This document shows positions 1-61,202 of a stretch of DNA of 64,000 nucleotides, piece after piece. The notes below the pieces were generated by a model. That model saw only the letters and a program-made list of their open reading frames with translations. It was not told the DNA's origin and did no database searches. The stretch spans positions 62,001 through 126,000 of the forward strand of contig OZ316899.1 in the NCBI GenBank assembly GCA_973895155.1, read 5' to 3'. Both the position numbers and the translations under genes were made by a program. The stretch is from Marsupella aquatica (taxonomy: Eukaryota > Plantae > Marchantiophyta). How positions within the stretch are numbered: the stretch's first letter is position 1; each line of letters begins with the position of its first letter.

Positions 1-1304
1 CAAAATGCTAAAATGCATTTGAGTCCAGATATCCGGTTACTATGGTGATAGGCACAAATGAAATCCACCACTTGGAGGAAGATCCACAAAGTCTATGCAC
101 GCAGGAACCCATGTACTGTCCCTACCCATCAACCTTGGTTCAACTAAAAACAATTGTAGGGGAACTAGATCTAGAGACACGTAGCTATGTTTTGCAATAA
201 ATCTAGTGTGATTCAATCCGTACAATTATGTTTAACTATTCAATCTGTACAATTATGTTTAACTACAGTATAATATTCACGCTTATTCTATGATCCAAGC
301 CGTCACCAAAGATTTGCTCTAGAGGGATAATAATGTGGATTCCTATGAATCACCTAACAAGAAGCGGGCACTAACTAAGTACAAGTGTCCCTAATTAAGG
401 CTTCCATGCTTGAATTGGTCTTAGCCAATAGGAAGCAAGACCAAATTAACAATACTTTTTGTGTCCTCATGAATACATATATTCGAAGCTCTTAATCTAC
501 CACCAATGCTCTCTCCCCTTGCACCAGCCTAGGTACTTACATTCTTGAGGAGACCCATCCAGTGTGTCTAGAATGTTATACACAAGCCCAGGGAGAAGGA
601 ATTTTTTGCCCATTCCCTTTCTTTCAGTACACCTCTGTATGACATAAATTCCCATTGCGACATTTTCCTTTCTAGCATAGAGTGGGAGCCACACAAGGAG
701 CCATGGCTCCACCCTTTCCCATTCTTTCAGTGTGCCTTTGGTGTAGAGCAGGAGCCAAATATTGGAATTGTGTAATCCTGCACACCTCTAAGCTTGAACT
801 CAGGCAGGCTAATTTCATAGTGTGTCGGATTGGGATATGACAAAAAGCTAAAATCTCAGCCCACAAGATGCAGGTAATTAAGATTCCTTAGTTAGAAAAC
901 CCCTCCCTAACCCTAGTACTTCCGGAATGACATACAAATGGGCATACAAAGGCCCAAAGGAAAATGAATTTTTTGCCTTTCCCAATCTTTCAGTTCTTTT
1001 AGTGCACCTTTAGCGTAGAGCAATCCAAAAGGATGAATAGGGCGTGTCAAAGTGTTACAGTCCAAATAAATAAATCAAAGTGTTATGGGATTCGTATTTT
1101 GGTAGCCCATAGTGATTTTGTCTTGACTGTAATAGTGTTTTATGACCTGAGCAATAATTGAGTTACATCTATGCAGCTTTAACACTCCTTTATGGAATCT
1201 TGGAATGAGGTGCTTGAACTTAGGTGGGCTAACTTCATGGTATGTACCTTTAGTATAAGGCAAACAAATAAAATTCCAGCAGACAGGATCATCCTAATTC
1301 ACCA

Positions 1305-2472
1305 TGTACAAATATTGAGGCGAGACCAAGGAAAGAACTGTACACTCCTTGGGACAAATCAATAGTAGATTTATGAAGGTGAGTACCTTAACATCAAAAT
1401 TCCCCCTTTCTTCCCACCTAGTACATGTTAAAATATTCATAAATCTAATGATAAAAATTACAACTTACAACTGCATTTTGGTACTCAGATCTGAAATGGT
1501 TCGTGTACTATTTGACCAGAATTATAATTTTTACTGAATTAGAATTAAAATCTTGAGAAAATTGTTTGCTACAGTGTGGGAAGATCTAAAAAAATTGACA
1601 CCATAAAATTGAAGTTTACACTTTATTGGATTCTTTATTATGAAATATTCTTGAACTTTTTGTTAGAAAAGTTCTTAAACTAAAGTCCTCAAGGTTTTGA
1701 AGGACAATGTTTTTGAATGGCTATCAAAGATGTCACCATTTGGATGTGGTTACAATTATCCCTATTTTCATTGCTCCCCGTGTGAATGAGGGTACTCTTA
1801 TCTCTTGAGGGTACCCTTGTGCTTGAGGGTACTCTTATCAGTGAGGGTACTCTTATCAGTGAGGGTACTCTTATCAATGGGTACGCTTATCAATAATGGT
1901 ACTTTGATCAATAAGGGTACCCTTATCAATGAGGATACTCTTATCTGCTGAGGGTACCCTTGCGTATGAGGGTACTCTTATCAATGAGGATACTCTTATA
2001 TCAGCAAGAGTACTCTTATCAATGAGGATACTCTTATATCAGCAAGAGTACTCTTATCAATTAATGGGTACACTTATCAACAATGGTACTTTGATAATGA
2101 GGGTACCCTTATCAGTGAGGGTATTCTTATCTCCTAAGGGTACCCTTGTGTTGGGCCTTGTGCATGAGGGTACTCTTATTAATGAGGGTAATTTTATTAG
2201 TCATAGCAAGCAACAAAGCAGGCAGGGAACCCCATGAAGGCGCCCCGCACCGGCAGAAGGACTCCGAACATACTGAAAAGACCCTAAACCTCACTAGACC
2301 AACATTTTGGGTATTGCATGGACAAATACTGGCCAAAGTACATGCCTAAATTTACCTGCTCTGTATTAGTTCCCTAAACCAGGGGTGATTTTTTTTATCA
2401 AATCCATACATTGTATCCTAGTTTTTTTCACACATGATGTAAACCTACATAATGTGAAAGTGGGAGAGAAGA
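1305..2472 (+). repeat. Repeat block A (direct copy of 9542-11002 and 30245-31650)
   Basis: Similarity starts at TGTACAAATATTGAGGCGAGACCAAGGAAA and ends at GTGAAAGTGGGAGAGAAGA in all three copies. This copy is more diverged and has a shorter minisatellite. Confidence 0.95.
1789..2195 (+). repeat. 18-bp-based minisatellite (GAGGGTACTCTTATCART)
   Basis: Units at 1825, 1843 and 1861 have an 18-bp period, followed by variant units forming a higher-order repeat of about 145 bp. Confidence 0.95.
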
Positions 2473-2651
2473 CTTATGATTTGATACAATCTTCATTTAA
2501 CTATAGTACAATATTCACTAATCATCAGTATATATGGTAAGCTCCAATTCCTCCATATAGTATGTAGACAAAAATTGAAGCAATCGATGAAATAATTAAC
2601 AATTTCATTACACTTGATATTAATTACTTACAGTGCTTCCTTACTACTTCC

Positions 2652-5600
2652 TCACCAGTACTCAGGATATTTTGTTTTCACAATAGCAGCAGCAAACAAA
2701 ACAAAGTTATTCACTACTTTCCCTGTACCTATCTGCATGAACCAAGTAGCAAGTTCTTCATCACTTTTCTCTCGAATTTCTGGAAATTCCTTGAACAATT
2801 CTGTTTGTATCCGAGAAACCCTCCAGCCTTGCCACACAAAATGTCGAAGACGCTCGCCTGTTCTATCATTGCACTGATCACCATATGGTCCTTTATGAAT
2901 ACACATTCTAGTGACAACTACAGTATGTTGAAAGTGACACTTAAAACAAGTCCATGCATTTTGAGGGAATGTGTTCTTGCAGGTCCGGGCCTGGTGAGAT
3001 CCTAGACATCTAAAACACAATGACCGCAATATAGGACAGTTGACAGCAATGTGTACTTCTTGCTCCCTTGATTCAGGACACTGACAAATTAAGCATTGAC
3101 TTCCATCACCCGCAAAAGTTCTGATGATACGAAGATCCCTTTTATCACTCTCAAAAGATCGGTTGTGTGCCATAGCCCTTAGCCTTGCAACCACAGGCTC
3201 TGCTTCATGTACCCCTTGTATAATTGGGGTCATCGGCAAGGTGTTTCCTTGTCGTCTTGGCATGGGAGTGGCTGGGGGTTGCGTAGGAGTTTCATATGTT
3301 GACTCATCCGAACCCCCTCTTCCTGGAATTCCCATTGAAGATGATGCTACCTCATGTGGTGGAATTGAGGCTGTTTTACAAGGAATGTCTTGTGTGAACA
3401 CCTCAAAGTCGACTATGTCCACACCTGGGCTGCACATCACAGATGCTTGGGAACACAAGTCACACAAACTAGAGAATGGAATAAGATGACATACTTGAGG
3501 TTTTCCATCGACCTGGTCATGGAGCCCAAACCGACGACATGATGTCTTGTTCTCTATCCATTTGTGTGAAGCTGCTGTGGTTGAATCAATGCGTTCGGCC
3601 ATCTTGCGATAAGCAAGGTTGGTCACCACATAACTCATCGCCGGGAGCCCATCACGTCCACCTCGTCCAGATTCTTGGTGGAAGTGTTCCAGAGACCTGA
3701 AACTACCACGATGAATGACAAGCTTAACCCATTTATAATTGTATCCACTACTAATCACTCCGGTGGCCACCATGATCTTACAAGCACCTGACGTCCAAGA
3801 ACTCAATGAAGCCCTCTTCACCGCTATGTCCAGATGCGCATGCACATACACACATGACATTTCTTTCCCTTGGAGGATTCTTGTAGTTGATTCCACCTCC
3901 TCGCGGGTTAGACAAAATACTAGGGCCCTCTCTTCTGGCAAAGAATATGCTCTCCAATCACGCAGAAGACTCACTATTTCTTGATCCATCATGTTATGGC
4001 CAACCTCAACAACGGCATACCTGATGTTGGGTCTCACAGTAGGACAACGAATCCACACCATCTCTGTAGCTAACATCCGCTCAATATCAACTTGATTCTT
4101 GGGTGCTAGGGATGCAGTTAACCCTATGATTTGGCAATTAATTTCCATGAGGCCAACCAACTTTTTCATTGACGGTCGAAAGTCAGATAACAGGAGGTGC
4201 ACCTCGTCGTAGACAATGGAATGCAAGGAACCACTGCATTTCAACTGCTTTGCCAAGATAATGAATAGTTTGGATTCTGCAGCAATCTCCACAGCCACAA
4301 AAATGATCGAAGGAGGTCTTGCCACTTCGACTGCACCATCCTTATACACAACACAACTAATATTTGCTTGTTTGCATTCCTCTACGTGGCCCTCTACTAG
4401 GATAGTGAGTGGAACGATCACAATCACCGTCCTATTATGTCCCATGGTGGAAGGTGCCATGAACACCAATGATTTTCCAGACCCAGTGGGTAGTATGGCA
4501 ACAAAGTCCACCACATTATCTATGGATAGAGCAACTGCTGTTGCTTGTTCCGACGATTTCCACTGTTGATGACCAAGCCTTCTTAAGGCTTGACAAGCTC
4601 CAGCAGTCCTATTGAGACAAACTTGTAGCAGGGGATCACTTTCTCCACTTGCCAATAATGTCTGATGGATGTTTGAGTGGAAAACTGTAAACCGCCTCCT
4701 TTTGGGAATTTGCCTCACCTCATATTCAACACCTCCAACAGGTCCCAAAAAGTCAAAAGGTGCAGTCGACATTACCTCGGGCCTCTGTGACCCACCGAGG
4801 CCAACCAACTTGTGCCACAATCGTGACACCAATACACACCCTCTTAAAATATGTCCATCCATGCCTCTAGGATCCTTTGTACTACGAGCATAGTGATGGC
4901 CGACCGTAGCTGTTTCATGACCACCTGCTACATCCACAAGGTCTTCTTGTAAATGGGCCTTACAAGCTCGTATATTCTCACTCCAATGTGCTGCCACATG
5001 CCGGTACTTTGCAATCCCAAATGGAATGCCACAGTGCTTTTGGAAAGCATCTAATACACTGGCAGAAAGGTCTGCTCCCGTCAGCCTCTTGTCCATGGCC
5101 ACAAACCAACAATCCAGGTACATTGCTGCAACTTCCGGACCCCACAAAATATTTGCCACGAAAGATTGTACTGGGCGAACTAGACATAACAATTTCACAA
5201 ATAGGTGGCTTTGATTGTCAGGAATGAACCGAGCAGTGAGGTTTATAGGTTTCCCAGCATTTGCACATTTGTGGTAGGATTGATAAACCATCAGCGTATC
5301 AGATAACCAAATGAATGCTCTATCCCCAGTGGCAGTGTTGCGAATCAATAGGCTCGAGTATTCTTCCCCTCTTGCAGGTAATCCAGAACAGAAATGCAGA
5401 AGTAGGTTCAATAGCCTCTGTAGCTTGGAACATGCAACCATCCACCTGTGGAGTGCAGGCATGTTCCAAATAACTCCATTTACATTGTCCACTCGTAGGA
5501 TGAAATGTGCCATCATCATAGTATTACTGAACATGTGGTTCAATAGATCCTTTCCATGTTGTTGGAACTCTGGATTTCGGGCGTCTATGAGAAAAGAATA

Positions 5601-7610
5601 ATGCACTTCGTCTGTCTGGACAGCATCATGAATGCAGCCCTTGGTACTCACCAAATTGAGTATCCATTCAGATTTGAGACCGAGAAGAACATCATGGTTG
5701 AGTGTTGTTGTCGCTTCTTCAACAATGGCACGGATCATATCCCTGAACGCATTCAATGTGATAATATCACCGTCAATTGAGCATGCTGTTTGTGTATCGT
5801 CCATGTGTATGAGATTTGGTCGAGCATGGGTGCCTCGATTAATTGTTTTTGCCAGTCGCATGTACTGCCGAACTTGAGTAATCGGCGTGTCCAATGCCAC
5901 ATCGCTCACGTATTTCTCCAGGATGTTTACTTCATTCCCAGGTAGGCCACGTGGGTTTGGATGCCAAAGAGCTTGTGAGAGTTCCATCAGGATTGTACAT
6001 CTTGCCCAGTAGTGAAGTATTGCCAATATTTTGGTGATTTTCCCAATTTTGCAAAATGCATACCCTGTGGATTGGGAACCCAGCCCGTCACTCTTTAGAG
6101 AGTGGAGGATAAAGAACCGAGTGAGCAAACAATCCGCCGGTGAACGAGCATACAACAGCTCCGGAATTTTTGGAGTCCAGAGAAGAAGTAGTACTCGATG
6201 GATATTTGTGAGATCAATATCACCTTCTTCTGCAGGCCGCGCCTCACTTGGTTGGCCTAATTGTGCCAATAATTGTTGTAGGGCACCTTTTAGATCCGGC
6301 CTATCTGTGTATATAACACAATGTTGAGGCCGAGAATCATAAGTACAAGAACGAACGAGGCAAAGAAGAAGGGAAACCATTCCAGCACAGTATTGTGGAA
6401 CAGTGTTTTTCTCTTGTAGTCCACCCAATCCCCTTGTGACATCGGCATTTGGAGTCGGCTTCATCACCATTCTTTGCACCCTATAATCTAAATTTCCACT
6501 AAGAATATTTCTTGTGCATGTCATGTACGCACGGACCACAGTGCCCAAGTACGATAGTGAAGACCCAGGGTCGGCGGGCCTTGGGGGTTCCATCTCAGAT
6601 TGCACTTCAACAAATGGCACACCTTCCGGCATGAACTGGGATGCAATCTCATGCCATCTTGATACCCTTAGCCACGGCGACAATTCCCTCACTGGAGGTG
6701 CAAGATCTGTCTTTAATGACTGTAGATGAGCTTGAAAAACTTTTGCGACTGCACCTCTCGTACTCTGAGCTACTGCATCGTCCGCAAGGTACACATTGCC
6801 ATGGTCCACTCCATAGAATTTGCGGCCGACTCCCTTGAAGAGGGCTTGCACTTGACATGGAGTAGCAATGTCCTTGAAACCAAGGTGGTTGTGTTTCATA
6901 CATCGGTGATTTGCCATCGTCCGCTGTGATCTACAAAAGAAGATACATCTCGAGCAAGAGAAGCCCCAATGAATGAGGACGCCCGGAACTGGAGACAACA
7001 ATTCTGCAGTTGGATTGATTGTGTATGGTAGTAGGGACGCATCATTTGTACGTGTGAACAACACACCCTGCAACAAACCCGACAATTGCTCTGGTGTTGG
7101 ATTCGTGATTGAATTTTGTGTTGCAACTCTCACCCTGTCCATGTTCCTTCGATGACTTCCAACATGACGGATAATGCTACTTCCTTCCGTGTGCTGAAGG
7201 GCTGTATGGCATTGCAAGCATACTAGAAGAACAAGGTTGTTGTGGTGAACAATGCAAAGCTTTGCATTTCTCAACATGTCTGGTGTTGCTAACAGGTCAT
7301 GATCTAGGATAGTGGTGGGGACTTGGTTGACAATTGGATCGTCTACATCCATGAACGGGTCAACTCCTACTGCTTCATTGTGTTTCCTTTTGTAGTGAAG
7401 ACGTAAACTATCACTACGGGGATAGGACGAGGAACATGTGGCCACAGGGCAATGGAATCGACCATCCTCTTCTTTCTCAATGATCTGGGTTGTGCCATTG
7501 TTGAGCTGCAATTGGTAAGTAGAACGGTGAACTGAGCGGGAATGGGAACTGCGAGAGTTTGCTGACTGAAATTCTTCCCCACACTGACTACATCCAAATA
7601 CTGTCACCAT
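2652..7610 (-). CDS. Tyrosine-recombinase-like / RecQ helicase fusion protein with C2H2 fingers and DUF3505-like domain (fungal telomere-linked-helicase-like architecture)
   Basis: Uninterrupted 1652-aa ORF. It has two C2H2 fingers (CSQC..HSRSVH; CPVATC..HYKRKH) and a Cys/His region (LVCLQCHTAL..HVGSH; PVPGV..GFSCSRC..MANH..CQVQALF) resembling DUF3505/OrsD. YR-like residues are PARG (R at ~5370-5372), YHK (~5268-5276), KYRH (~4998-5009), GH (~4917-4922) and HYA (Y at ~4890-4892). RecQ motifs are LPTGSGKS (~4470-4493), DEVH (~4198-4209), LTAS, HQESGRGGRDG (~3648-3680) and the RQC-like CRR..C..CDLC. The C-terminus is Cys-rich. Confidence 0.85.
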   Translation of the reverse strand: MVTVFGCSQCGEEFQSANSRSSHSRSVHRSTYQLQLNNGTTQIIEKEEDGRFHCPVATCSSSYPRSDSLRLHYKRKHNEAVGVDPFMDVDDPIVNQVPTTILDHDLLATPDMLRNAKLCIVHHNNLVLLVCLQCHTALQHTEGSSIIRHVGSHRRNMDRVRVATQNSITNPTPEQLSGLLQGVLFTRTNDASLLPYTINPTAELLSPVPGVLIHWGFSCSRCIFFCRSQRTMANHRCMKHNHLGFKDIATPCQVQALFKGVGRKFYGVDHGNVYLADDAVAQSTRGAVAKVFQAHLQSLKTDLAPPVRELSPWLRVSRWHEIASQFMPEGVPFVEVQSEMEPPRPADPGSSLSYLGTVVRAYMTCTRNILSGNLDYRVQRMVMKPTPNADVTRGLGGLQEKNTVPQYCAGMVSLLLCLVRSCTYDSRPQHCVIYTDRPDLKGALQQLLAQLGQPSEARPAEEGDIDLTNIHRVLLLLWTPKIPELLYARSPADCLLTRFFILHSLKSDGLGSQSTGYAFCKIGKITKILAILHYWARCTILMELSQALWHPNPRGLPGNEVNILEKYVSDVALDTPITQVRQYMRLAKTINRGTHARPNLIHMDDTQTACSIDGDIITLNAFRDMIRAIVEEATTTLNHDVLLGLKSEWILNLVSTKGCIHDAVQTDEVHYSFLIDARNPEFQQHGKDLLNHMFSNTMMMAHFILRVDNVNGVIWNMPALHRWMVACSKLQRLLNLLLHFCSGLPARGEEYSSLLIRNTATGDRAFIWLSDTLMVYQSYHKCANAGKPINLTARFIPDNQSHLFVKLLCLVRPVQSFVANILWGPEVAAMYLDCWFVAMDKRLTGADLSASVLDAFQKHCGIPFGIAKYRHVAAHWSENIRACKAHLQEDLVDVAGGHETATVGHHYARSTKDPRGMDGHILRGCVLVSRLWHKLVGLGGSQRPEVMSTAPFDFLGPVGGVEYEVRQIPKRRRFTVFHSNIHQTLLASGESDPLLQVCLNRTAGACQALRRLGHQQWKSSEQATAVALSIDNVVDFVAILPTGSGKSLVFMAPSTMGHNRTVIVIVPLTILVEGHVEECKQANISCVVYKDGAVEVARPPSIIFVAVEIAAESKLFIILAKQLKCSGSLHSIVYDEVHLLLSDFRPSMKKLVGLMEINCQIIGLTASLAPKNQVDIERMLATEMVWIRCPTVRPNIRYAVVEVGHNMMDQEIVSLLRDWRAYSLPEERALVFCLTREEVESTTRILQGKEMSCVYVHAHLDIAVKRASLSSWTSGACKIMVATGVISSGYNYKWVKLVIHRGSFRSLEHFHQESGRGGRDGLPAMSYVVTNLAYRKMAERIDSTTAASHKWIENKTSCRRFGLHDQVDGKPQVCHLIPFSSLCDLCSQASVMCSPGVDIVDFEVFTQDIPCKTASIPPHEVASSSMGIPGRGGSDESTYETPTQPPATPMPRRQGNTLPMTPIIQGVHEAEPVVARLRAMAHNRSFESDKRDLRIIRTFAGDGSQCLICQCPESREQEVHIAVNCPILRSLCFRCLGSHQARTCKNTFPQNAWTCFKCHFQHTVVVTRMCIHKGPYGDQCNDRTGERLRHFVWQGWRVSRIQTELFKEFPEIREKSDEELATWFMQIGTGKVVNNFVLFAAAIVKTKYPEYW

Positions 7611-8584
7611 CCTGCATGAAAAACAACAAAATTAGCTGATGCCATATTTTGCTCTGAAATTATATAGAGCTCTTCACATCAGATTTTCCCGTGGAGCTCC
7701 ACAATGGACTCTGAAGCCAATCTCAATTGGCCAACTATCCTAGTATTTTTCATTTTCCATTACCTATGTCCCAAGCTTGATCTGCACCATGAATGTGCAA
7801 TCTAACCCAAAGCTTCACTGACATAGAAGTTGGTTGAGCATGTTCACACATTCAACGTACTTTGTGAGCACAGACACAAATTAAACGAATTCAATCCGAC
7901 TCTTCTCCAAAACCTGGTCAGTTGGATCATATTTTCACTATCTTGGGAAGTGAACTTGTACCATGCACTCTCTCGATGCCCTTGGGGCTAATAATTACTC
8001 CAATGCCTCTAAAGCCACCAAACTAATTAATAAAGCCCAAGAACTTATGCCATGGTAATTAGTGACACTATACGGTGTATATTGTCATTCCATACGATAA
8101 TAAATCACATACTATTATTCATTGTACAGTCTATGTTCTTATATTTTGATGTGCTATTACTAGGACACTGAGAACTTATACATACCACGTACATACCCTA
8201 AAAAATTAAACTTAGAATGATAGAGCCTTGTGTATACATACTGCATCTAATGCCTAGTTGCAATGAAATAAATAATTCTACTTCAGGATATATTATTTAT
8301 GTGTGTAGGACCCCCTAAATGTTTTCACTGGTAGTAAAGTAATCATTAAACTGTTAAACCCTTTCAAGGTATTATAAACACTTAATGAACACTCAACTAT
8401 TATTTGATTCCTAACCAGAACAATCTTTATGGTACAACCTCTCGCCAAGTTATTGAGTATCCACCAGGCTACAAGTAGTCAATTCAGATCGGCGGCAGAA
8501 GAATAATCATTTTGCCTTGAGTAACTCTGAAGTGTGATTCATTTATGCCTGGTTTGGCCTTGATTTGTCATCCGTCACATCTGG

Positions 8585-8665
8585 TCATCCCGCCCCTATC
8601 CTGACACCGTCCCAACCTCATCCCAACCCTATCCCAACCCCACCCGGTCCCAACCACACCCCGTA
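8585..8665. repeat. C-rich low-complexity tract (TCCCAACC-like units)
   Basis: catcccgcccctatcc..tcccaacctcatcccaaccctatcccaaccccacccggtcccaacc; repeated in copy 2 at ~29291-29370. Confidence 0.8.
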
Positions 8666-9541
8666 GGGCAACATGTAAACTTGCCCGTTAACTCAAACCG
8701 GGCATTTATCCCACACAAAGATCATCCAACCCCAGGGGCAAGTGAATAATCATTATGCATGGAGTAACTGTGGAGTGTGACTCATTTCTGCCAAGGGAAG
8801 ATCATCCAAACCCAAGGGAACACAGTACATTGAAAATGGTCAGAACATTGAACTACACAAACAAGGAGGGAGCTCGACCTGTACTTGCTCTAGGTTGGTC
8901 TCCTAGTGGTGTTGGCTATGCTGATGAGGAAGAAGCCTGAAGCACTTGTTGCTGCAAGCTGCCTCTCTCCGGCCACAATTCCAGGATCCTGAAAATTAAG
9001 CTTCACACCCTGACTTGGGCGTATGCCCAGGTTGACATTTTCCCTCCCTATCATTCTTATTGTTCGGAGAACATGATTGACAGTGAGTTTTGAAGTAAAT
9101 TCTGGTGTATTATCCTTTTCCTTTTAATTAGTAGATATTTAAAAAGCAGAAGGGTTTGCAGAATTTATCACAAAGGACATGGTTACATTTCATTATATTG
9201 AGTTTATGATGGTTTTATTACATTTTGCTTTGAACTTTTTATTGAATACTCCACGTTTCTCAGATTGCACAAGGGGATCTGGTTGACATTGGGATGACTT
9301 TGTGAGTGCAAAATCTACTTCCTTTAGTAGTTGGGAAGCTATCCGCCCTCTTTCACAAGATATTGCCTTACAGTTCATTCAAAAGTAAGTTGGCTTCAAG
9401 CACTATTGTTGCCAATGATATGAAGCTCTATATGCACTTGGAGAAATGAGTTTCAGTTTCAGGTTTCTTGTCATTGTTTTTGGTCATCCTCAAGACACTA
9501 AATCCTTTTAGTGTTCTGTGCAGTGTCATTCATGCCAACAT

Positions 9542-11002
9542 TGTACAAATATTGAGGCGAGACCAAGGAAAAAACTGTACACTCCTTGGGACAAATCAAT
9601 AGTAGATTTATGAAGGTGAGTACCTTAACATCAAAATTCCCCCTTTCTTCCCACCTACATGTTGAATTATTCATAAATCTAATGATAAAAATTACAACTT
9701 ACGGCATTTCGGTACTCAGATCTAAAATGGTTCGTGTACTATTTGACCGGAATTGTAATTTTTACTGAATTGGAATTAAAAGAAAAAAAATTCAGTGGAT
9801 TTGTTTGCTACATTGTGGGAAGATCTAAAAAAATTGACATCATAAAATTGAAGTTTACACTTTATTGGATTCTTTGTTATGAAAACATTCAAGTTGAACT
9901 TTTAGTTAGAAAAGTTCTTAAACTAAAGTCCTCAAGGTTTTGAAGGACAGTGTTTTCGAATGGCTATCAAAGATGTCACCTTTTGGACGTGGTTACAATT
10001 ATCCCTATTTTCATTGCTCCCCGTGTGAATGGGGGTACTCTTATCTCCTGAGGCTACCCTTGTGCTTGAGGGTACTCTTATCAGTGAGGATACTCTTATC
10101 AGCGAGGGTACTCTTATCAATGGGTACGCTTATCAATAATGGTACTTTGATCAACGAGGGTACCCTTATCAATGAGGATACTCTTATTTCCTGAGGGTGC
10201 CCTTGCGTATGAGGGTACTCTTATCAATGAGGGTACTCTTATATCAGCAAGAGTACTCTTATATCAGCAAGAGTACTCTTATCAATGGGTACGCTTATCA
10301 ATAATGGTACTTTGATCAACGAGGGTACCCTTATCAAGGAGGATACTCTTATTTCCTGAGGGTACCCTTGCGTATGAGGGTACTCTTATCAATGAGGGTA
10401 CTCTTATCAATGAGGGTACTCTTATATCAGCAAGAGTACTCTTATCAATGGGTACGCTTATCAATAATGGTACTTTGATCAACGAGGGTACCCTTATCAA
10501 GGAGGATACTCTTATTTCCTGAGGGTACCCTTGCGTATGAGGGTACTCTTATCAATGAGGGTACTCTTATATCAACAAGAGTACTCTTATCAATGGGTAC
10601 GCTTATCAACAATGGTACTTTGATAATGAGGGTACCCTTATTAGTGAGGGTATTCTTATCTCGTAAGGGTACCCTTGTGTTGGGCCTTGTGCACGAGGGT
10701 ACTCTTATTAATGAGGGTACTTTTATTACTCATAGCAAGCAACAAAGCGGGCAGGGAACCCCATGAAGGCGCCCCGCGCCGGCAGAAGGACTCCGAACGT
10801 ACTGAAAAGACCCTAAACCTCACGAGACCAACATTTTGGGTATTGCATGGACAAATACTGGCCAAAGTACATGCCTAAATTTACCTGCTCTGTTTTAGTT
10901 CCCTAAACCAGGGGTGATTTTTTTTTATCAAATCCATACGTTGTATCCTAGTTTTTTTCACACATGATGTAAACCTACATCATGTGAAAGTGGGAGAGAA
11001 GA
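9542..11002 (+). repeat. Repeat block A' with expanded 18-bp-based minisatellite (10031-10725)
   Basis: Direct homologue of 1305-2472 with a longer GGGTAC-rich array. Confidence 0.95.
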
Positions 11003-11887
11003 AAAATAGCAAAAACCAAAGCAAGCCAAAAAAATTCAGCTTTTTCCAGGAAGAAAAAAAAATTTCACCTCCAGGAGGGAAGGAAAAAAACTTCAACTTC
11101 AGGCGCTAGGGAAAAAATTAAACCTGAGGGGAGGGCAGGGAAGGAAAAACAATTTGAGCTTCAAGAAAGGGAAACTTTAAGATTTTAGACAATAGGAAAA
11201 CTTCAGGTAAGGTAAGAGTCAAATATTTTTTTGTAGTATTTGTAAATTAAAGTCGGGAGTTTTGAACGTATCTATTCTCTTCAGTGAATTTATTTTGGCT
11301 ACCTTGTTCCCCAGAAAGGCAAGCATTACACTGCATCGGTTGAAGTGCAAAGAAGATAGGACTGTATTTTCTTTCCTGGGTATTGACCAATAGACACATT
11401 ATTAAAATATGGGGTACCATTTATTCTAGTAAACAATTCTCTCATTACATTCAATATAAATGGACCCTAAACTCCCCCTACCCCATTCTGGTGTAGTCGT
11501 TTATTTTTACCGTCAACCCTAGATTTTTGGAACCTAGAAGCGACATGTGAGGCACACTTCACATAAATCAAAATTTATTTTTTCCCGGTCCCACATGACC
11601 TGCCAATTTTCCCTTGCATTGGACATTGGCATTTAGATAAAAAAACACTACTCAAATAGATGATTGTACAACATAACAAATGTGCTGTACGACACCTCAT
11701 TTGTGGCCAAAAACTCATTTGTGGCCGAAGACTGTTTGTTACATTCCTACTTTACCTAACCTGCATGATTACATCATGTCGTCGCGCACGTTTATAGTCT
11801 TTGTGTCCATGTATGTAAAACCCCACATTTTTACAGCCCAGCTTAGTACATTTCTTAATACATTCATTCATACTTTAATTAATTATT

Positions 11888-12295
11888 GGATTACCCCGGC
11901 ATTTGCTTCGTATCTATGCGTAGGATACCCCGGCATTTGCTTTGTATCTATGCGTAGGATTACCCCAGCTTTTGTATCCATGGGTATGGCCAATTTCCGA
12001 ACGTTAACCTTACTAGTACTTTATTAATTATAAGATTACCCCGGCTTGCGTTTCGTATCCTTGTGTAGGATTACCCCAGATTTTGTATCCATGTGTATGG
12101 CACAAATCTTGAACATTAATTAATGTATATTTATTGATGGATAAGATTACCCCAACTTTCGTATCCGTGTGTATGGCACAATATCCTAAGATTAACCTGT
12201 CTAGTACATTGCTTCGTGATTGGATTACCCCGAGGTTCGGACGTATTCCTAACATTAACCTTAGTTGTACATTACTCGATTATTAGATTACCCTA
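11888..12295 (+). repeat. ~35-bp minisatellite (GGATTACCCCGGCATTTGCTTYGTATCTATGCGTA) with degenerate extensions
   Basis: Units at 11888, 11923 and 11957; the ATTACCCC motif recurs to ~12295. Second copy at ~32517-32925. Confidence 0.9.
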
Positions 12296-12779
12296 AATTG
12301 TACACATATATGGCCCAATTTCCTAATATGAACCATAATACTGCATTACATGACCTCCACTTTTGTATCTCTTATTGACAATGGCCGCTTATCATGTAAA
12401 CAGAGTCAAGAGTGTGTGGTTTTCTCAAAATACCCAGCCTTGTTCTTTTTCTTTAAATAGTGTTGTGTGGGTTTATCAGAATACTTGGCCTTGTTCCTTT
12501 ACAGATGAACACCTATTAAGATTAAGAGTGTACCAAGGGTTAGCACGAGGTGCAATACAATGCCCACAACATGATAGATTAGGCAACCATACTACCCTGT
12601 TGTGCCTGTTTGTTCCCAAACAAACCTTCACCCCTAACCCCTACTAGAAGGTTGCCCATTCAACCTCCTTACAGTAGCAGGCTGAACAGAAATCAACATT
12701 GATTCTATATCAATCAACATCCGCCACAATGTTAATTCACTTTTTGAAGAGGGGAAAAAAAGTTCAGTTGAATTCAAAA

Positions 12780-14200
12780 TGGTGAATTCTTGCTCAAGCC
12801 AAAAACGTCATCCATTACACAAAAGTTTCTATTCATGTAAGGAAATAGTTCTTCAATGTTGAACGAAGACTTCTCTGAGCAACATCACATCATGTGCTCA
12901 GCGTGAAGAGTCCTGGTGATAAACTTGCTGCTGGTTTCTACTCCCCAAGGGATCCAACTTTCAGCTCCCGTGCACCTGCAGTGAGAGGTAGGTTTTAATT
13001 GAACTCATGTATCCTCATCCGATCACTACAAGCAATTGCAATGTCAAGGTAGCAACCATTTCAGCTACATCTTAAATGGCCATATGTTGCATCACCTACA
13101 ATCATCTATACAAAAGTTCAGCTTAGTTACGCTTCAATTTTGTGTACGAGGATGTGTAAAATCTGCCAATGAACTATAACAGTAATAAGAGCACCAGACT
13201 TTGAGCTGCTCACCATCTACAGGGGATATTTGTGGACCACATTATACCCAAAGCGCAAGTTTTTAGTGTTGCACCCACAAAACTCACCACCTACACCATG
13301 AATTGATGACAAATCCAATTAATTTCACCATACACACAAGAGAAGACAACAGTTCCAGCTTATTGTGGGAATACCACACATCCCGAGTGGTACTGAATAT
13401 GCAATCAATGAGGTCACACTTTTGCATCCATCCACAGCAATTCACCTTGCAATCATGAAATGGCGAGACCGTACCCTGCCTGTCATTGTGCTTTTGGTAA
13501 ATTTTGCCAAATGCACCTCAGCTTCCTCCTCTTTGACTGTTGTTTTCGGGTTCAACAGTTGTATCCCCTTCACCAGTTCATACAGGATGTTCACTCCAGT
13601 CCACCGTCTCATTGGAGGAGTCCAAAACAACAGCTGACTCTTGTTCCGGCTCGAGTTGGGGTTCTGGGAAAAGCTCAACTTCAAGGTTGGGTGCTATACC
13701 CTTGACCTCATGCCAAGTCACCTCCCATAAACTGTACCCACTTATACTACTCCGTTGCACAAGGACTCCTTCTTTGTGCATGATAACAACTTGTTCTTAT
13801 ACTACTCCGTTGCACAAGGACTCCTTCTTTGTGCATGATAGCAACTTGTTCTTCAGCAACTCAGGAATGACATCTTCCAACTTTTCACTGCTTTTTCCCC
13901 TCAGTCGGGGCTGAATCTACATATCCAATCGGCCCACCACAGCCAGCCATATTGCTCAAAAACTAGGCAGCTAGCCCAAAGAGTTTACTGTTCACTTGCA
14001 GCACAATCTTGGACAATAACCGGGAAATCAATTGCAAGGGCGCATCCATACCACGATACTCTATGGGTAGATGTCTGACACCAACATCCAACACATCATG
14101 AAGCATGACAAACATAACCTGGTGAAAGAAAAGGCCACATATTGTTAGAGGAAGCTGGACATTATATGTAGAGGAGGATATACACCGCTGCAATCACAAT
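12780..14200 (-). pseudogene. Possible degraded multi-exon gene of unknown family
   Basis: Protein-like fragments occur on the minus strand (e.g. KGIAPNLEVELFPEPQLEPEQES, KEEEAEVHLAKFTK, GDATYGHLRCS*NGCYLDIA) with plausible GT/AG sites, in-frame stops and a frame-breaking 55-bp tandem duplication (13741-13850). No family was recognised. Confidence 0.3.
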
Positions 14201-14621
14201 ATGGTCAATTTCCGAACTTCCTTTCTCTCTTCTGCCCACATACTCGTGTCAGAACTTGTGCTATGCAAAGCCATATCTCACCCACTTGTTATGTGCCCAT
14301 AGATGCATCCTTTTTTAGGCCCTGTGTGGTGCATACACTATCAGCATTCTCGTCACCTACATCTCATATCCAATGGGAGTAAACCTTAGCCTACTTCAAA
14401 TACAATTTTACAGAGTGACCCGCTAAAACATGTACGGCACATACACACCTCTTTGCACACCACCAACTGGAGGTTTTGCAAATGCTTGGGCAACATGGTG
14501 GTAGAGGATGTCATTAGCTCAGCTCAAGTGGCCTCCAATCACTTGTCATAATTGTAAGAGTCTCAAAGCCTGCCTCAAAAGCCTCTAGATGGCGAGCAAT
14601 GTGCCTTAATTTGTGAATGCT

Positions 14622-17600
14622 CTATCGTCTCGGCCTTCCTACTGCCTGTTGCCTAGACAACCTGAGTCGCTCCTCTTTCAGTACTTCCTGCAATATTGCG
14701 TTATCCTTTTTTCCGCTACTCAAACTTCCGTGTACGCATTCATCAATCAGTGTCCTCTTTCTCTGTTGTACATGCCACAATGTCTCCTCAATAGTATTCC
14801 TCATTAGGAAATGTGTAACAAACACTTCTTTTGTCTGCCCTAGACGATGAGTTCTGTCCACTGCTTGATCTTCTGCTGTTGGATTCCACCATATATCTGT
14901 AAAGAGTACATGATTGGCAGCCGTGATATTTAATCCCGTATTGGCAGCCTTTAATGACAGTAGGGCGACTTGTATCTGAATCAATCCAGTGTAGTGAAAT
15001 GCTTAGTGAGTGACCGATGTACAATTTCTCAAAAACATGCACCAAAACAACCTATATGGGGTGCTTTATGCATACCTGGCGAGATTCGGCAAAGTCTCTC
15101 AGATTTTGGTCACGCTTCTCCAAACTCATGCTCCCGTCCACCCTTGTGAACTGGATGTTTGCACTTTCAAGAGTTCCTTGTAACAAGTCAATTAAGCCGG
15201 TCCATTGAGAAAACACAATGGTCTTATCGTCACTTCCAGACTCTCGCAGCTCGTTCAAGTAAGACATGACACCATCAATTTTGGGTGATGGCCCAGAAGT
15301 ATGAAAACCGAGAATTTCCAAGTCCTCCTCTGCCAATTCAGTGCCAGACGACGTACATATATCACATACTCTGTACACCGTACTCCATGAAATTTGCTGC
15401 TTACAGTGTGGTGCTCCGCATATTATGTCCTCTTCCAGCGGATCAAAATAACAAGCTGAACTGGAACAGTAATAGTGACCACAGATGGAAATCATGGGGT
15501 CATCAAAAAGCTCACCCTGAAAATATTACAAAAATGGACTTCAAAGTTAGTGTGCAATGTCAAATGTTTCACCAATCGCCACCGGTTGAACAACACTCCC
15601 ACGGGGTACTGGATTTACAAATAGGATTTACTATGTGCGAAAAATCACCTGGCACTTGTTACAAGTCACCCCTTCTGGAGCATCCAACAACTTGTTTACC
15701 AATTCGCCTGAACGGACTCCATCGGGTTGGATCTTGGGAGTATTCACACTATCTTCTTTTTCATTGTGAAAGACAAGGTCACGATGCCCACAGTGGCGTC
15801 TCATTCTCAGCATCAACGACAGCAATTTAGCTTTCTCTTTCTTATTTCCCTTCTGTGAAGCCCACAAATCGACCCGGTTGAGTAATTGTACAAAACAACA
15901 GGGCAACCACGGTATCTGTGCACAATTGAAGAATGACAAAGTACACCCACATAGGGTGGGCCAAACTTTGGACATACCGAGTCTTCCGCTGCACTCCTTG
16001 CCTCTAATTTCTTATACACTATGGCATCGCCTTCAACTAAAAAGTCGAGATGAGCTACTCTTACATGCTTCTTAGGTAGATTCAGGATACCTGCAAACAA
16101 AATATGTCCAGCTATAAGATTGCATACAAACATACAACACATCGAAATCCATATGAAATTCAACCAATTCCAAATAATGGAAAAGTCCAATTCCAACACA
16201 TGTGAACATTGTAGTTGTAGTTGTCTTACTCTTATCTCTTCTCAATGTAATGGCCCTCAGCTCCTTGTGTAGTATTGCGTGTCCAGCTTTCCTACTTTTT
16301 GCAATATGCTGCCTCAAAATCTTGAACCGGTCTATGTCACAGTAAGGGGGGTATCCAAGAAATTTGAAATAACTGTATGCCTCCCAAGTAGAATTTGACA
16401 CAGGAGTTCCACTTACACACCATCTGCTTCTTGCATGTAGGTTGCAAGCAGCTAATGCTCTGCCACTCCTATGGTTTGAGATTGCCTGACACTCGTCTAG
16501 AATCACCCTGTACCATTGTACCTGCTCCAGGCAAGGAGGCAATGGATCCTTCGTTTTCTTGGGTGTTGGTTCCACAGGAATTTTTTGACTTAATTTCCCT
16601 TTCCTTCTCAGTGTAGGTGGGTCCGCAGTGGAATGTTGGGCGAGAGTGCCATAAGTGGTAATTATAACATCGTATAAGGCCAACTGCTTTGGATCCATAC
16701 ATCTGTCCGACCCGTGAAATATTAACACCTTTACATTTGCCCTTGCAGTAGTTTTAGTGGTAATCTCACGTTTCCATTGAGTCATAACACTTCCAGGACA
16801 AACGATAAGGGTCTTGCTTCTGGGTGGTCGATTGGTGACTAAGAGTGTAATCAGTTGAATTGTCTTCCCCATTCCCTACCAACAAATACAGTTAGTTCAT
16901 TTCATGCAATGGGGAAGAAAATTCCAAGTTCACACCACAAAACACATGATGACCCTGAAGTCAATGCGCAGCCCACTCAACATTAGGAAATGATGTGAGC
17001 TTTAGGGTTTTACCTGGTCATCTGCCAAAATACCCCCAAAACATTCGGAATCACCACTCTCCCTTGACAACATCCAGAATAGACCTTTCCGTTGATGTTG
17101 ATAAACTGTCACATTTTGCATAAGCCCATCTGGTGGGCTTGCTTCTCCTGTGAAGTCCCTATCATCGATGTATTCCTGCAATGGTCACGGAATAACAGTC
17201 AGCCTTCTTAACCGGCTCTACTTATCCAAACTGAGTATTTGGACAAGATGCTGCGACATGGTTAGTTTACTCACTCGTTCCTCTGCTTGCGAAAAAGGTT
17301 GGACTCGGACTCGGGGAAAGTCCATCTCTGAATCTGAATCTGAACAGGAATCTGCGATTGTACGACGCACGGAGGTAGCGTCAATGTCAACATGATCCAA
17401 GCTATCCCCTTCATTATCAAAAGACCACAATAGTTGTCGCCTTTTTGGGGGGTCCTCCAAATTAATACGAGTCATTTGCGAGACCACAGATGGAGAACAA
17501 CTTGCAAACTCATCCCTCTGTACGCGATTTTTACATGGCACTGGCACTGTTGTCATTTCATTGTTGGAGGTTGAACCAAGTAATGGACGTCCATGAGCTT

Positions 17601-20600
17601 GCCTCTTTGGTTCCGCGATGAACGGTATAACTGGTTCAGCGTTCGACACTTGCTTTCTCTTCAAATTCCTCACTGTACATTCCAACTCTTCAACCTTTGC
17701 AAGAGCTATGTGCAATTGGTCATCCTTGAATTTTAATTCTACTTTCTGAGTCGAAATTATTTGTTGCAAGTCTACATTCTCGCCCAATCTACAATGCACC
17801 TGTTCAAGCTCTGCCATTGTACGCTCTAAGTCCAATTTCAAAGACTCCACGTTAGTGCGCTGAGTATTGCGTTCGGCAGTGCACTTTGCTACCTCATTTC
17901 TCAGTTCCCCCATGCACATTTCGTTCTCCTTCAAAGCTTTGTGAGCAATTGCGTATTCCGCCTTCAGCCTTGTCTGTTCTACAAGTGCTCGTTGAAGGTC
18001 TTCCAACTTGCTCTGTGACTCTAATCTGAACAACTGAAGTTGTGTGCTCACATCATCTCGTTGTTTAGTGCACCCTGCAAGTTCACTTTCCAATTCTTCC
18101 ATGCGCATTTGGATATCCTTCAAAGCACATTCAGCACCTAAACATGATTCCATGCGCACTGCCTGCTCTACAACCTTCCGTTGAACATCTTCAAACTTGC
18201 AGTCTGACGACAATTTCAACAACTCAAGTTCATTGATCGCGGCATCTCGTCCTGCAACACACCTTTCAAGGTCAGCACTCAATTCTGCCATGCGCGATTG
18301 GTCCTCCTTCCAACCTTGTTCAGCAGCTTGGTAATTGTCATTGCGCTTTGTCACCTGCACAAGCTTTTCTTCAAGGTCTTTCAACTTCCATTGTGACTGC
18401 AATTTGAACTCTTCAAATTCGCTGGTGGCCGCATCTCGTTCTGCAGTGCCCATTTGAAGTTCAGCACTCAATTCTGCCAAGCGTGATTGGTCCTCCTTCC
18501 AACCTTGTTCAACAGCTTGGTATTCGTCATTGCGCTTTGTCACCTGCACAAGCTTTTCTTCAAGGTCTTTCAACTTGCATTGTGACTGCAATTTGAACTC
18601 TTCAAATTTGCTGGCGATAGCATCTCGTCCTACAGTGCCCATTTGAAGTTCAACACTCAATTCTGCCATGCGCGATTGGTCCTTCTTCCAACCTTGTTCA
18701 GCAGCTTGGTATTCATCATTGCGCATTGTCACCTGCATAAGCTTTTCTTCAAGGTCTTTCAACCTGGACTGTGACTGCAATTTGAACTCTTCAAATTCGC
18801 TGGTGACCGCATCTCGTTCTGCAGTGCCCATTTGAAGTTCAACACTCAATTCTGCCATGCGTGATTGGTCCTCCTTCCAACCTTGTTCAGCAGCTTGGTA
18901 TTCGTCATTGCGCTTTGTCACCTGCACAAGATTTTCTTCAAGGTCTTTCAACCTGCATTGTGACTGCAATTTGAACTCTTCAAATTTGTTGGTGATCGCA
19001 TCTCGTCCTGTAGTGCCCATTTGAAGTTCAACACTCAATTCTGCCATGCGTGATTGGTCCTCCTTCCAACCTTGTTCAACAGCTTGGTATTCGTCATTGC
19101 GCTTTGTCACCTGCACAAGCTTTTCTTCAAGGTCTTTCAACTTGCATTGTGACTGCAATTTGAACTCTTCAAATTTGCTGGCGATAGCATCTCGTCCTAC
19201 AGTGCCCATTTGAAGTTCAACACTCAATTCTGCCATGCGCGATTGGTCCTTCTTCCAACCTTGTTCAGCAGCTTGGTATTCATCATTGCGCATTGTCACC
19301 TGCATAAGCTTTTCTTCAAGGTCTTTCAACCTGGACTGTGACTGCAATTTGAACTCTTCAAATTCGCTGGTGACCGCATCTCGTTCTGCAGTGCCCATTT
19401 GAAGTTCAGCACTCAATTCTGCCATGCATGATTGGTCCTCCTTCCAACCTTGTTCAGCAGCTTGGTATTCGTCATTGCGCTTTGTCACCTGCACAAGATT
19501 TTCTTCAAGGTCTTTCAACCTGCATTGTGACTGCAATTTGAACTCTTCAAATTTGTTGGTGATCGCATCTCGTCCTGTAGTGCCCATTTGAAGTTCAACA
19601 TTCAATTCTGCCATGCGTGATTGGTCCTCCTTCCAACCTTGTTCAGCAGCTTGGTATTCGTCATTGCGCATTGTCACCTGCACAAGCTTTTCTTCAAGGT
19701 CTTTCAACCTGCATTGTGACTGCAATTTGAACACCTCAAATTCTCTGGTGACCGCATCTCGTCCTGCATTGCACATTTCTTGTTCAACACTCAAATTTGC
19801 CATGCACGATTGGTTCTCATTCCAACCTTCTCCAGCATCTTCATATTCGTCATTTCGCATTGTCTGTGCCGTCAACTCCCCTTCAAGGTCATCAATCCTG
19901 CCTTCTAACTTTGATTCCGATGACTGAAGTTTACATTGAATAGGTTGAGGTTGGGTTTCCCTTCTTGTAGTACCCTCGTTGCCAACATTTGGCCCCGATA
20001 TAAGGCTTTCCCATGAAAATCCCCAATGTAGCAGCAACTGTGTAATAGCAGTCCCACAATAAGCGGGGAACGCCTTTGACTCACGAACATTCCTCATACC
20101 CTGAAGGTGTTTCTTGAATTTACTTATTTCCAAAGCCAATTCATCGTAAACTAAATCACTCCAATCTGGTAGCAATTTTGGCACAGGGCCTGCTAGTCTT
20201 TTTCCCTTCGGCAAAGTACCACACAAATACCAGTAGAAATAACTCAATTGTTTTGCTGATAACTGTGAAGGCTTCTCCTTACCCAGCAGAATTTCCTGCA
20301 CCACTCTAATTGCCCCAGACCATCTATCATACGGAGCTCTCAAAAGCTTTAAACTATAGGGATTCCCTCTTATTCGTGGACGAACAAACAAATCATTGAA
20401 TTCAGGACAGTGCATTCTCTGCCTATACTTGGCAAATGTACCAGATGGCAGCTTGAATGCCGCACGTAACACATCTTGTGTGATTTTCAATGAACATCCT
20501 CGGAATTCACTGGATTTTGATGCATAATCAAATCCCAACACAAACTCCTTCACCCCACATACGGCTGTTATGTTGTAATCAATCCCAAAAGTTTGTTGCA

Positions 20601-20739
20601 GACCAAGGTTGAAAATCATTGACGATCGAGTTGGATCACCTCCCACCAAACTGCGAATTCGTTCCGGTGTGCAGGAATGCCACAACGTTCCAGTGCCGCC
20701 TGTTTCAATTCCAACCCACGGATTGTCAAAATGTTCCAC
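14622..20739 (-). CDS. Predicted chimeric protein (~1794 aa): transposon-associated N-domain, coiled-coil repeats, and RAD5/RAD16-subfamily SNF2-RING-helicase
   Basis: Exon model: 20739-17275, 17175-17014, 16875-16230, 16090-15978, 15852-15649, 15516-15076, 14975-14622. All introns are GT-AG and 99-139 nt, and the total of 5385 nt stays in frame. SNF2 motifs: EASPPDGLM..HQRKGLFWM..GGILADDQ|GMGKT, TLIVCP, DVIITTY, VILDECQ, RWCVSGTP, LLSLMLRMRRHCGH, RING CNKC..CGHYYC..CGAPHC, KTIVFSQW, RVDGSMS, LNITAANHV..WWNP..QAVDRTHRLGQ. The SNF2 part is secure; the exon 1 to exon 2 junction is predicted. Confidence 0.8.
18250..19761 (-). repeat. Coding tandem repeat, 8 x 189 bp (63 aa = 9 heptads)
   Basis: RDA codons are spaced exactly 189 nt apart (19761 to 18249). 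Units 2-3-4 recur as 5-6-7, and about three degenerate units follow. Confidence 0.95.
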
Positions 20740-22450: not shown

Positions 22451-22789
22451 TAATTATATACAAGCCATCCGGATAGTGCACTTGTGATGCCCGTTGAACT
22501 CAAATTGCCATCGGAAGCTATATATATGGACAGATTGCTTGACAGAATTCCACAATTACTTGTTATACTGTATAGTTGATATATTCTTGTGTTCATTTTT
22601 CCTGTCCATTTGGAAATTGCACAAATTAACAAAAGTATCCATAAAGGTCTGTCATCGTAGAAAGTGATGACATCAAGTCAATTTTGAGCACTCCCTCGAA
22701 GGTGTAATTGTTCAGCATTTGTAAATACCTCGCACTATATATCACGACTGTACACATTGAATTAGTTCTACTCAGCCATTTCCCATGTC

Positions 22790-60518: not shown

Positions 60519-61202
60519 TCATTCTTCCGATGATGGTTTCATCCTCATCACAGCTGCCGCCACCCGCTCAAAATTGTTCAGCATTCTCTCCACGTCCATT
60601 GAAAGTAGCCAAGGCTCAAATTTACTGTCATCCATTGGCATGTCAGGAAACAGCTGCCTGAGTCGACTGCGCGAGACGTCATTCCTATATGCATGCCAGA
60701 TTAGAATTCGTATCCTCTCTCCGGACAGATCGTTGCAGGTGCTGCTCCCGGATTCCCACGTGTGCACCTGGGTTCGGTAGATTTGATCAAACGGAAAGAA
60801 ACACTTGAAGCAAGCATTATTATGACGTTCTTGACTCTTCACATTACAGTTGGAAACCCGATGGCGATTGGACAGACACCGCAGGCATAACCCTCTCATT
60901 ACGCCACACTCCCTTATTCCATGATTTGCAGGGCTATGCGAGTCCTCCCAACACAGGAGACATCGCCTCCCATCACCCCCATGCCGGCGAACATACTCGA
61001 GATCAATGATATCCTTCCACATGTTTGCCTCTATCCTTATGCTCTCCGGTCTCGGAATATATACATCCTGAACAGCTGCTCCGTCTGGCCTTGTGTGATT
61101 GCCTCCACTTCGGCTTGGCGCTGACCCTTGCAGATGTGTGTACCAGGATGCCTTAACTTGTAACTTTATATTTATTTTGAAGTTACAACTGGGGTCAAAC
61201 AA
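60519..61202 (-). CDS. Cys/His-rich protein homologous to the C-terminal tail of the YR-RecQ ORF (possibly a terminal exon or remnant)
   Basis: GDGRRCLLC..H..CGVMRGLCLRCL..H...C..ACFKCFF..CNDLSGERIR...W..LFP..W..LNNF..AAA matches GDGSQCLIC..H..CPILRSLCFRCL.SH...C..TCFKCHF..CNDRTGERLR...W..FP..W..VNNF..AAA at 2652-3145. The first ~25 codons overlap a 91-bp tandem repeat and are probably non-coding. Confidence 0.7.
   Translation of the reverse strand: MFDPSCNFKINIKLQVKASWYTHLQGSAPSRSGGNHTRPDGAAVQDVYIPRPESIRIEANMWKDIIDLEYVRRHGGDGRRCLLCWEDSHSPANHGIRECGVMRGLCLRCLSNRHRVSNCNVKSQERHNNACFKCFFPFDQIYRTQVHTWESGSSTCNDLSGERIRILIWHAYRNDVSRSRLRQLFPDMPMDDSKFEPWLLSMDVERMLNNFERVAAAVMRMKPSSEE

Follow-up and report, generated by a model that had tools for sequence, protein, structure and literature searches.

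The DNA analysed here is a stretch of 64,000 nucleotides of contig OZ316899.1 (positions 62,001 to 126,000), called the window below, and all coordinates are positions within it. On its minus strand lies a long open reading frame (ORF; 2652..7610, stop codon included), which encodes a protein of the telomere-linked-helicase (TLH) family. Based on the ORF listing and the translation of the window, it comprises 1652 open codons and is intron-free, in agreement with the first-pass annotation of this DNA, which had described a single open 1652-aa frame. The chance of meeting no stop codon over this length is about 1e-43 at the local base composition. The frame is intact and aligns over its full length to a relative of 1654 aa (P0001), with 32% identity and 98% coverage.

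All parts of the protein are encoded on the minus strand. The N-terminal zinc-finger region (aa 1-241; 6888..7610), assigned by Pfam and a motif scan, holds four C2H2-like motifs, at aa 7-28, 54-77, 131-153 and 219-242, together with an OrsD/DUF3505 domain (PF12013) at aa 122-241, which Pfam detects with E-values of 6e-8 to 4e-9. The sole profile support for the C2H2 patterns is a match to zf-C2H2_6 at an E-value of 0.008, which is below threshold (Pfam). Between the OrsD domain and the recombinase-like core, alignments of homologues reveal a family-specific conserved region (aa 242-594; 5829..6887), many homologues being alignable over query aa ~190-950. A Pfam search of aa 242-594 returned no match, and the region is possibly the DNA-binding arm of the recombinase. 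The predicted tyrosine-recombinase/topoisomerase-IB-like catalytic domain itself, the equivalent of the ‘TLH domain’, spans aa 595-945 (4776..5828) and was assigned by AlphaFold2, VIA-align, Foldseek and conservation.

Downstream of this domain, Pfam, TIGR00614, PDB matches and motifs agree on a RecQ-type superfamily 2 helicase core (aa 1012-1391; 3438..4577). Pfam recognises its DEAD part (aa 1022-1173, E 4.5e-16) and its Helicase_C part (aa 1224-1321, E 3.7e-14), and the recQ_fam model of NCBIfam (TIGR00614) matches the window protein with an E-value of 2e-39. The best solved relatives of the helicase are RECQ1 (E 4e-25), E. coli RecQ, WRN, RECQ5 and BLM, the PDB E-values for RECQ1, RecQ and WRN spanning about 1e-25 to 1e-22. 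Helicase motifs I, II, III and VI are intact (Walker A GSGKS, DEVH, LTAS and QESGRGGR, respectively). The protein ends in a Cys-rich C-terminal domain (aa 1451-1647; 2670..3260) with a CCHC-like knuckle at aa 1532. This tail belongs to no Pfam family and gave only weak leads in an ESM Atlas search (scores of 0.70 or less), and tblastn finds it again in the clade relatives L001, L005, L006 and L008. A paralogue of the tail is present in the window as a stand-alone 227-aa ORF (60519..61202, minus strand; BLASTP 30% identity over 202 aa, E 5e-26, also seen by tblastn). The C2H2 fingers, the DUF3505-like domain and the Cys-rich tail listed by the first-pass annotation are therefore real. Its RecQ helicase with a Zn module is accepted for the helicase only: Pfam RecQ_Zn_bind is not matched in the window protein, though the recQ_fam alignment crosses the usual Zn region, and a Zn module appears plausible from the sequence.

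The catalytic domain was characterised by conservation and by structure. An exhaustive HMMER search with aa 1-1000 as query yielded 1447 relatives, among which the most conserved stretch is aa ~560-950. Conservation was scored in an alignment of 64 of these relatives with a mean column identity of 25%. E750, K781 and R870 are invariant (64/64 for both K781 and R870), and R747 (63/64), Y907 (61/64) and H898 (59/64) nearly so, which puts the conservation of the catalytic set R747, K781, R870, H898 and Y907 at 92-100%. These are the residues that had been picked out from the sequence alone, and all of them exist: R747 in PARG (codon 5370-5372), K781 in YHK (5268-5270), R870 followed by H871 (R870 codon 5001-5003), H898 in GGHE (4917-4919) and Y907 in HHYA (4890-4892), all on the minus strand.

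AlphaFold2 models the region with confidence (pLDDT, the predicted local distance difference test, of 85.3 for aa 540-960 and 90.9 for aa 595-945). The model was compared with 48,161 representative PDB chains using VIA-align, a structure search independent of Foldseek. The top 26 chains are exclusively tyrosine recombinases, type IB topoisomerases, Flp and Ndc10, with Z-scores between 10.7 and 4.8; no unrelated fold scores above 4.7. XerA reaches 10.7, XerH and XerD 9.2, Cre 8.1 and Ndc10 5.7-6.0; phage integrases and the bacterial, pox and human type IB topoisomerases are matched as well. With the domain-only model (aa 595-945), the Z-score against XerA is 10.9. Within the model, R747 is located at the start of a helix, K781 after a beta-hairpin and R870 inside a helix. 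H898 and Y907 are spaced 9 residues apart, as fits Cre and XerD.

Several results speak against this domain being a recombinase. The 64 relatives have no conserved His three residues ahead of R870, so that the His of the HxxR motif is missing, a trait also found in type IB topoisomerases. Only ~150-165 of ~350 residues superpose on the known structures, which implies that the middle domain carries large insertions of about 100-150 residues. Foldseek against the PDB does rank recombinases first, with weak E-values of 0.3-1 even when the domain is folded alone. In sequence searches, no recombinase Pfam family (Phage_integrase or related) matched any of the 64 members at E-values up to 1, no recombinase was found by a profile search of PDB sequences at E-values up to 10, and comparing Cre and lambda Int with the family profile in hhalign gave no signal (probability <2%). 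Moreover, we know of no enzymatic evidence for the recombinase domain of any TLH protein. Since there is no recombinase match at the sequence level, the case rests on the fold and the conserved residues. On these grounds, the middle domain, which is joined to a RecQ helicase, is predicted with good support to have a tyrosine-recombinase/topoisomerase-IB fold and a conserved catalytic set, and the recombinase–RecQ fusion proposed in the first-pass annotation stands with it. The comparison it had suggested with Cre, XerD and DUF3435 succeeds for the fold of XerD and Cre in VIA-align; the Foldseek E-values stay weak, and Pfam DUF3435 is not matched.

According to published descriptions, TLH proteins carry C2H2 motifs and RecQ motifs, and their helicase is preceded by a ‘TLH domain’ of ~250 aa (10.1101/2024.02.27.582403; PMC4522978). 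They have been reported from fungi and one choanoflagellate, and their function is called undetermined (10.1101/2024.02.27.582403). In the window protein, the RecQ helicase lies in the C-terminal half, the TLH domain directly upstream of it and the C2H2 motifs at the N-terminus. As determined by Foldseek, the model of aa 540-960 matches aa 627-1069 of S. pombe Tlh1 and Tlh2 with E-values of 4e-14 and 5e-14 and a template modelling (TM) score of 0.62. Several copies of S. cerevisiae Y'-Help1 follow (E 1e-7, TM 0.54), and XerC and XerD appear lower down. The AFDB cluster matches contain many proteins named ‘C2H2-type domain-containing’ or ‘DNA 3'-5' helicase’ (E 1e-20 to 1e-15) and one that was automatically named ‘Tyr recombinase domain-containing protein’. 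In the ESM Atlas, the neighbouring clusters are of the OrsD/DEAD kind and come mostly from Ascomycota. Based on the fold match to Tlh1/Tlh2 and the published architecture, the window gene belongs to the known TLH family, as a member from a plant of liverwort type. The likeness to fungal telomere-linked helicases, which had been noticed at the outset, is thus confirmed, and the ‘new class of mobile element’ is not, since Foldseek groups the domain with Tlh1/Tlh2 and Y'-Help1, that is, with a long-known family. No telomere repeats were found within the 64-kb window.

The host looks plant-like and is apparently a liverwort, consistent with the plant genome assumed earlier. A neighbouring SNF2 fragment has its nearest matches in Streptophyta clusters of the SNF2/RAD5/CHR28-like kind. 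Among the named homologues of the TLH protein, the closest is P0034 of the liverwort Calypogeia fissa, with 51% identity over the domain; C. fissa has a second one, P0039, encoded on a 46.8-Mb scaffold. Word-based protein searches, which are insensitive, returned one match for the SNF2 neighbour and only the C. fissa protein for the domain query. The DNA of both C. fissa loci has decayed, one being 43% identical over 1606 aa with in-frame stops (L002) and the other fragmentary (L005). Other metagenome and Logan contigs carry intact family members of 1549-1654 aa (L001 and L010), and several JGI metagenomes share identical contigs with broken related copies (L006-L009). The ENA metagenome scaffold L010 carries its intact 1549-aa member at 1173-5822 and a strongly diverged, OrsD-bearing paralogue at 7564-9963, 1.7 kb downstream on the same strand. 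L006-L009 (JGI 3300028862, 3300029998, 3300030943 and 3300030047) represent the same low-GC (36%) eukaryotic contig, found as at least 11 contigs and carrying both a TLH-like gene in fragments and an ORF with a Crinkler domain; its source is presumably an abundant eukaryote in these samples.

The window sequence pairs with C. fissa P0034 (support 100/96) in a maximum-likelihood phylogeny of the domain. Both fall within a clade of 16 rows (100/99) that contains the two C. fissa lineages and sequences without a taxon name, including metagenome sequences. All named fungal sequences, from Serpula, two Suillus, Rhodofomes, Candolleomyces and the chytrid Cladochytrium, are placed in another clade (100/99). 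The tree thus bears only in part on the acquisition from fungi that the first-pass annotation had thought possible: the nearest named relative is a liverwort sequence, and the named fungi stand apart. The presence of two old lineages in one liverwort argues against a single recent transfer.

Next, the contigs of public sequencing runs were aligned to positions 2301-8300 of the window. In organism A (run X1), a single unbranched contig of 5814 nt covers 2552-8300 and extends beyond, with 13 substitutions and 4 gaps. Short X1 contigs, at a depth of ~107 as for the ORF, bridge the junction at 2472/2473 between the 3' flank of the gene and the adjoining repeat (block A, see below). Contigs that span the gene and its junctions indicate that the gene is physically linked to its flanks in data beyond the window sequence. 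Organisms B and C are run labels and presumably denote relatives. For organism B (run X3), 464 contigs of mixed identity were retrieved, mostly 1-4% diverged, and for organism C a few contigs that are 1-9% diverged. Internally deleted forms, with skips of 913, 152 and 814 nt, are found in organisms B and C. The mixed identities and the deleted forms show the TLH family to be multi-copy in these two organisms.

The copies in organism B differ from the window in a way that keeps the frame. The indels listed within the ORF are of 3 nt or sum to 3 nt. The flanks show indels of 1, 2 or 4 nt and, on the 5' side, a single deletion of 9 nt. Among the ORF substitutions (40 of 161 sites listed), 19 are synonymous and 17 non-synonymous (n = 36), where ~28-30% synonymous changes are expected by chance. 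This corresponds to an omega of about 0.35 (binomial p about 0.002), a rough value from a partial list. Frame-keeping indels and the synonymous bias point to selection on the gene, and judging from these sequences the ORF is maintained by purifying selection. The intact frame had been read as a sign of youth or selection before, and these data agree with the latter.

The gene sits in a unique segment of the window (~2473-8255) that is bounded by other repeats. Its 5' flank (7611..8255, minus strand) runs to the edge of a 20.7-kb duplicated block, as located by a self-BLAST boundary at 8256, and its 3' flank (2473..2651, minus strand) to the edge of repeat block A, the junction bridged by the X1 contigs. 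Block A (1305..2472, plus strand), identified by self-BLAST and depth, is a dispersed repeat with internal tandem units and further copies A' (9542-11002) and A'' (30245-31650). Its read depth is ~8 times that of the ORF, the reads join it to several other flanks, and it has sharp ends of its own. No target duplication was found around the A...A' pair. A' and A'' both lie within the segmental duplication (8256-27906 = 28962-49126, 98-99% identical). The left edge of this duplication at 8256, 645 bp upstream of the TLH start codon, is a repeat boundary in the reads too, and the organism A reads have other flanks at about 8121 and 8262. Only short repeats at chance level were detected when terminal inverted repeats and terminal motifs were sought in 2400-8400. 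The sequences of loose-end reads do not recur in the window, and no conserved flanking structure and no flanking repeats were found at the loci of the relatives. One organism B contig departs from the window sequence at ~2470 into unrelated DNA, which would fit if the gene lay elsewhere in that organism or if block A had been inserted later.

These boundaries do not bear out the autonomous element that excises, replicates and integrates, as postulated by the first-pass annotation: no terminal repeats or target duplications were found, and the bracketing repeats are parts of the separate dispersed repeat and of the 20.7-kb duplication. A reading of the direct repeats as long terminal repeats (LTRs) was rejected for lack of a target-site duplication, because block A is independent (~8x depth) and because its right copy is part of the 20.7-kb duplication. 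An LTR or DIRS-type element was discarded too, as there is no reverse transcriptase domain and no other ORF of at least 100 aa except antisense ones, and the relatives have no flanking repeats.

The remainder of the window is repetitive. The two copies of the 20.7-kb duplication are direct and near-tandem and differ by small indels and by an insertion of 1.2 kb that lies near 45.4-47.1 kb in copy 2. On the minus strand of the first copy, a 1173-aa ORF (17218-20739) made of about ten 189-bp (63-aa) tandem repeats is situated upstream of the SNF2-domain ORF (16072-16872). In the second copy (37844-40798, minus strand), the array is three units shorter and the ORF is split into 238 and 727 aa. 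The duplicated block also contains tandem arrays at 21277-22570 (period ~116 bp) and 23138-24196 (~153 bp), with copies at 41336-42630 and 43198-44256. Between the duplication copies, at 27907-28230, lies a G/T-rich degenerate minisatellite (GGGTTG / GGAGTTGTG-like), which is not a canonical telomere repeat. Towards the right end, a 673-aa ORF (57657-59678, plus strand) without a significant Pfam match adjoins the 227-aa paralogue ORF, in a GC-rich stretch (54% GC at 58-60 kb). An Rfam scan of the window gave nothing, and a scan for bacterial promoters and terminators was uninformative, as expected in a eukaryote.

Taken together, the locus is best explained as a TLH-family gene that is a selfish or semi-domesticated, chromosome-end-associated element and spreads by recombination rather than by cut-and-paste with defined termini; we put the probability of this at roughly 60%. 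In such an element, the zinc fingers would position the protein on DNA and Tyr907 would cleave and rejoin the DNA via a 3'-phosphotyrosyl intermediate, a chemistry implied, in the model, by the conserved R-K-R-H-Y pocket. The RecQ motor might then unwind the cleaved duplex or branch-migrate the resulting joint or Holliday junction, so that the gene and its surroundings could recombine into other chromosome ends or other copies. Recombinase-like chemistry and unwinding may be united in one protein by analogy with Borrelia ResT, for which ATP-dependent unwinding and a chemistry likened to type IB topoisomerases and tyrosine recombinases have been described (PMC5388405). By comparison with the TLH and Y' families in fungi, spread by self-promoted recombination would be the most economical reading. 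Signs of multiple copies in relatives are the variants in organisms B and C, the two degenerate and divergent C. fissa lineages and the tandem paralogue on L010. Two observations fit the end-associated element less well: one C. fissa copy is interstitial, 8.5 Mb into the 46.8-Mb scaffold, and the lineage of organism A may, from its unbranched contig, be single-copy.

Unlike this element, a Crypton-like autonomous DNA transposon would excise a ~5.8-kb unit as a circle and integrate it at short target sites, assisted by the helicase. The conserved recombinase fold and catalytic set would suit it, and so would a compact, intron-free gene with short flanks between unrelated repeats (2473-8255), the numerous variants and deleted derivatives found in organisms B and C, the different left flank from ~2470 in organism B and the degenerate C. 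fissa copies at unrelated places. Still, we regard it as unlikely, given that neither termini, short terminal matches, terminal inverted repeats nor target-site duplications were found, that the apparent boundaries are the edges of other repeats and that the loci of the relatives share no flanking structure; cross-species purifying selection and the single organism A contig would equally fit a resident gene. Such a resident gene could be a fully domesticated host gene of TLH ancestry, no longer selfish and working as a plant factor for chromosome-end maintenance or repair. The low omega, the frame-preserving indels between related organisms, the intact motifs and the unbranched contig of organism A all agree with that, but the C. 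fissa relatives are pseudogenised, organisms B and C have many variant and deleted copies and the neighbourhood is repeat-rich and duplicated, which makes full domestication quite unlikely.

A further explanation concerns the chemistry, as the recombinase-like domain could be a DNA-binding scaffold without cleavage, like that of yeast Ndc10, and the protein a targeted RecQ helicase. Ndc10 is indeed among the structural matches, the HxxR histidine is missing and no recombinase family matches on the sequence level. The retention of the Tyr and of R, K, R and H in 59-64 of 64 sequences as divergent as these is hard to explain without catalysis, and we hold a non-cleaving scaffold to be distinctly improbable. 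Fungal contamination or an assembly chimera might be suspected from an architecture earlier described only in fungi and a choanoflagellate, and from the mostly ascomycete neighbours in the ESM Atlas. It was rejected as scarcely credible: X1 contigs of the same depth as the ORF bridge both junctions with the flanking repeats, the gene lies inside 64 kb of continuous sequence with the Streptophyta-like SNF2 gene, its closest named relatives are from a liverwort, one of them on a chromosome-scale scaffold, and it is placed outside the clade of all named fungal sequences.

The recombinase reading of the TLH domain seems to be both well supported by the model and unpublished. No paper pairing TLH terms with ‘tyrosine recombinase’ or ‘recombinase’ was found in the literature searched, which does not exclude one in the subscription literature, and the automatic UniProt name ‘Tyr recombinase domain-containing protein’ indicates that databases partly detect the link. 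Chromosome ends have long been known for their TLH genes and, in yeast, for their Y' elements. If the fold and the R-K-R-H-Y set are read correctly, they would offer a testable chemistry for the spread of TLH genes among ends or for their action when telomeres fail. The range of the TLH family is extended past fungi and a choanoflagellate to liverworts, which carry several divergent lineages. At least one of these appears intact and under purifying selection, and this poses the question of cross-kingdom transfer versus ancient origin. As a tentative and rather doubtful extension, fungal, choanoflagellate and liverwort TLH genes, and perhaps the Y' helicase, might form one ancient selfish chromosome-end superfamily, in which an active TLH-domain recombinase and the RecQ helicase copy the element between ends, the liverwort lineage stemming from cross-kingdom transfer or from an ancient eukaryotic origin.

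Compared with known systems, Cryptons and Starship captains (DUF3435) are likewise eukaryotic, built around a tyrosine recombinase and devoid of terminal inverted repeats. The window gene differs from them in that its protein lacks a Pfam DUF3435 match, the test for a Starship captain, as well as a Phage_integrase match, and in having no defined termini or target motif; to our knowledge, neither Cryptons nor Starship captains contain a helicase. With XerA, XerD, XerH, Cre, lambda Int and poxvirus topoisomerase IB, the window domain has the catalytic fold in common (Z up to 10.9), and its R, K, R, H and Y follow one another as expected and occupy the appropriate places in the secondary structure. 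It departs from them by the absence of profile similarity and of the His at R-3, by its insertions and by its fusion to a helicase. Y' is a subtelomeric element amplified by recombination. In its helicase, Y'-Help1/YRF1, the region upstream of the helicase part (about aa 330-745) matches the recombinase-like domain of the window by fold, far more weakly than Tlh1/Tlh2 do. Among fungal TLH proteins (S. pombe Tlh1/Tlh2, Magnaporthe TLH1, Ustilago UTASa and Fusarium TLH) and in Monosiga, the parts follow each other in the same order, and an intron-free ORF of about 1500-1900 aa is shared with the fungal members. The window gene is set apart from these by its host, apparently a liverwort and not a fungus, by its place in the tree, within a clade that has no named fungal member, and by an added Cys-rich C-terminal domain, which is common within its own clade.

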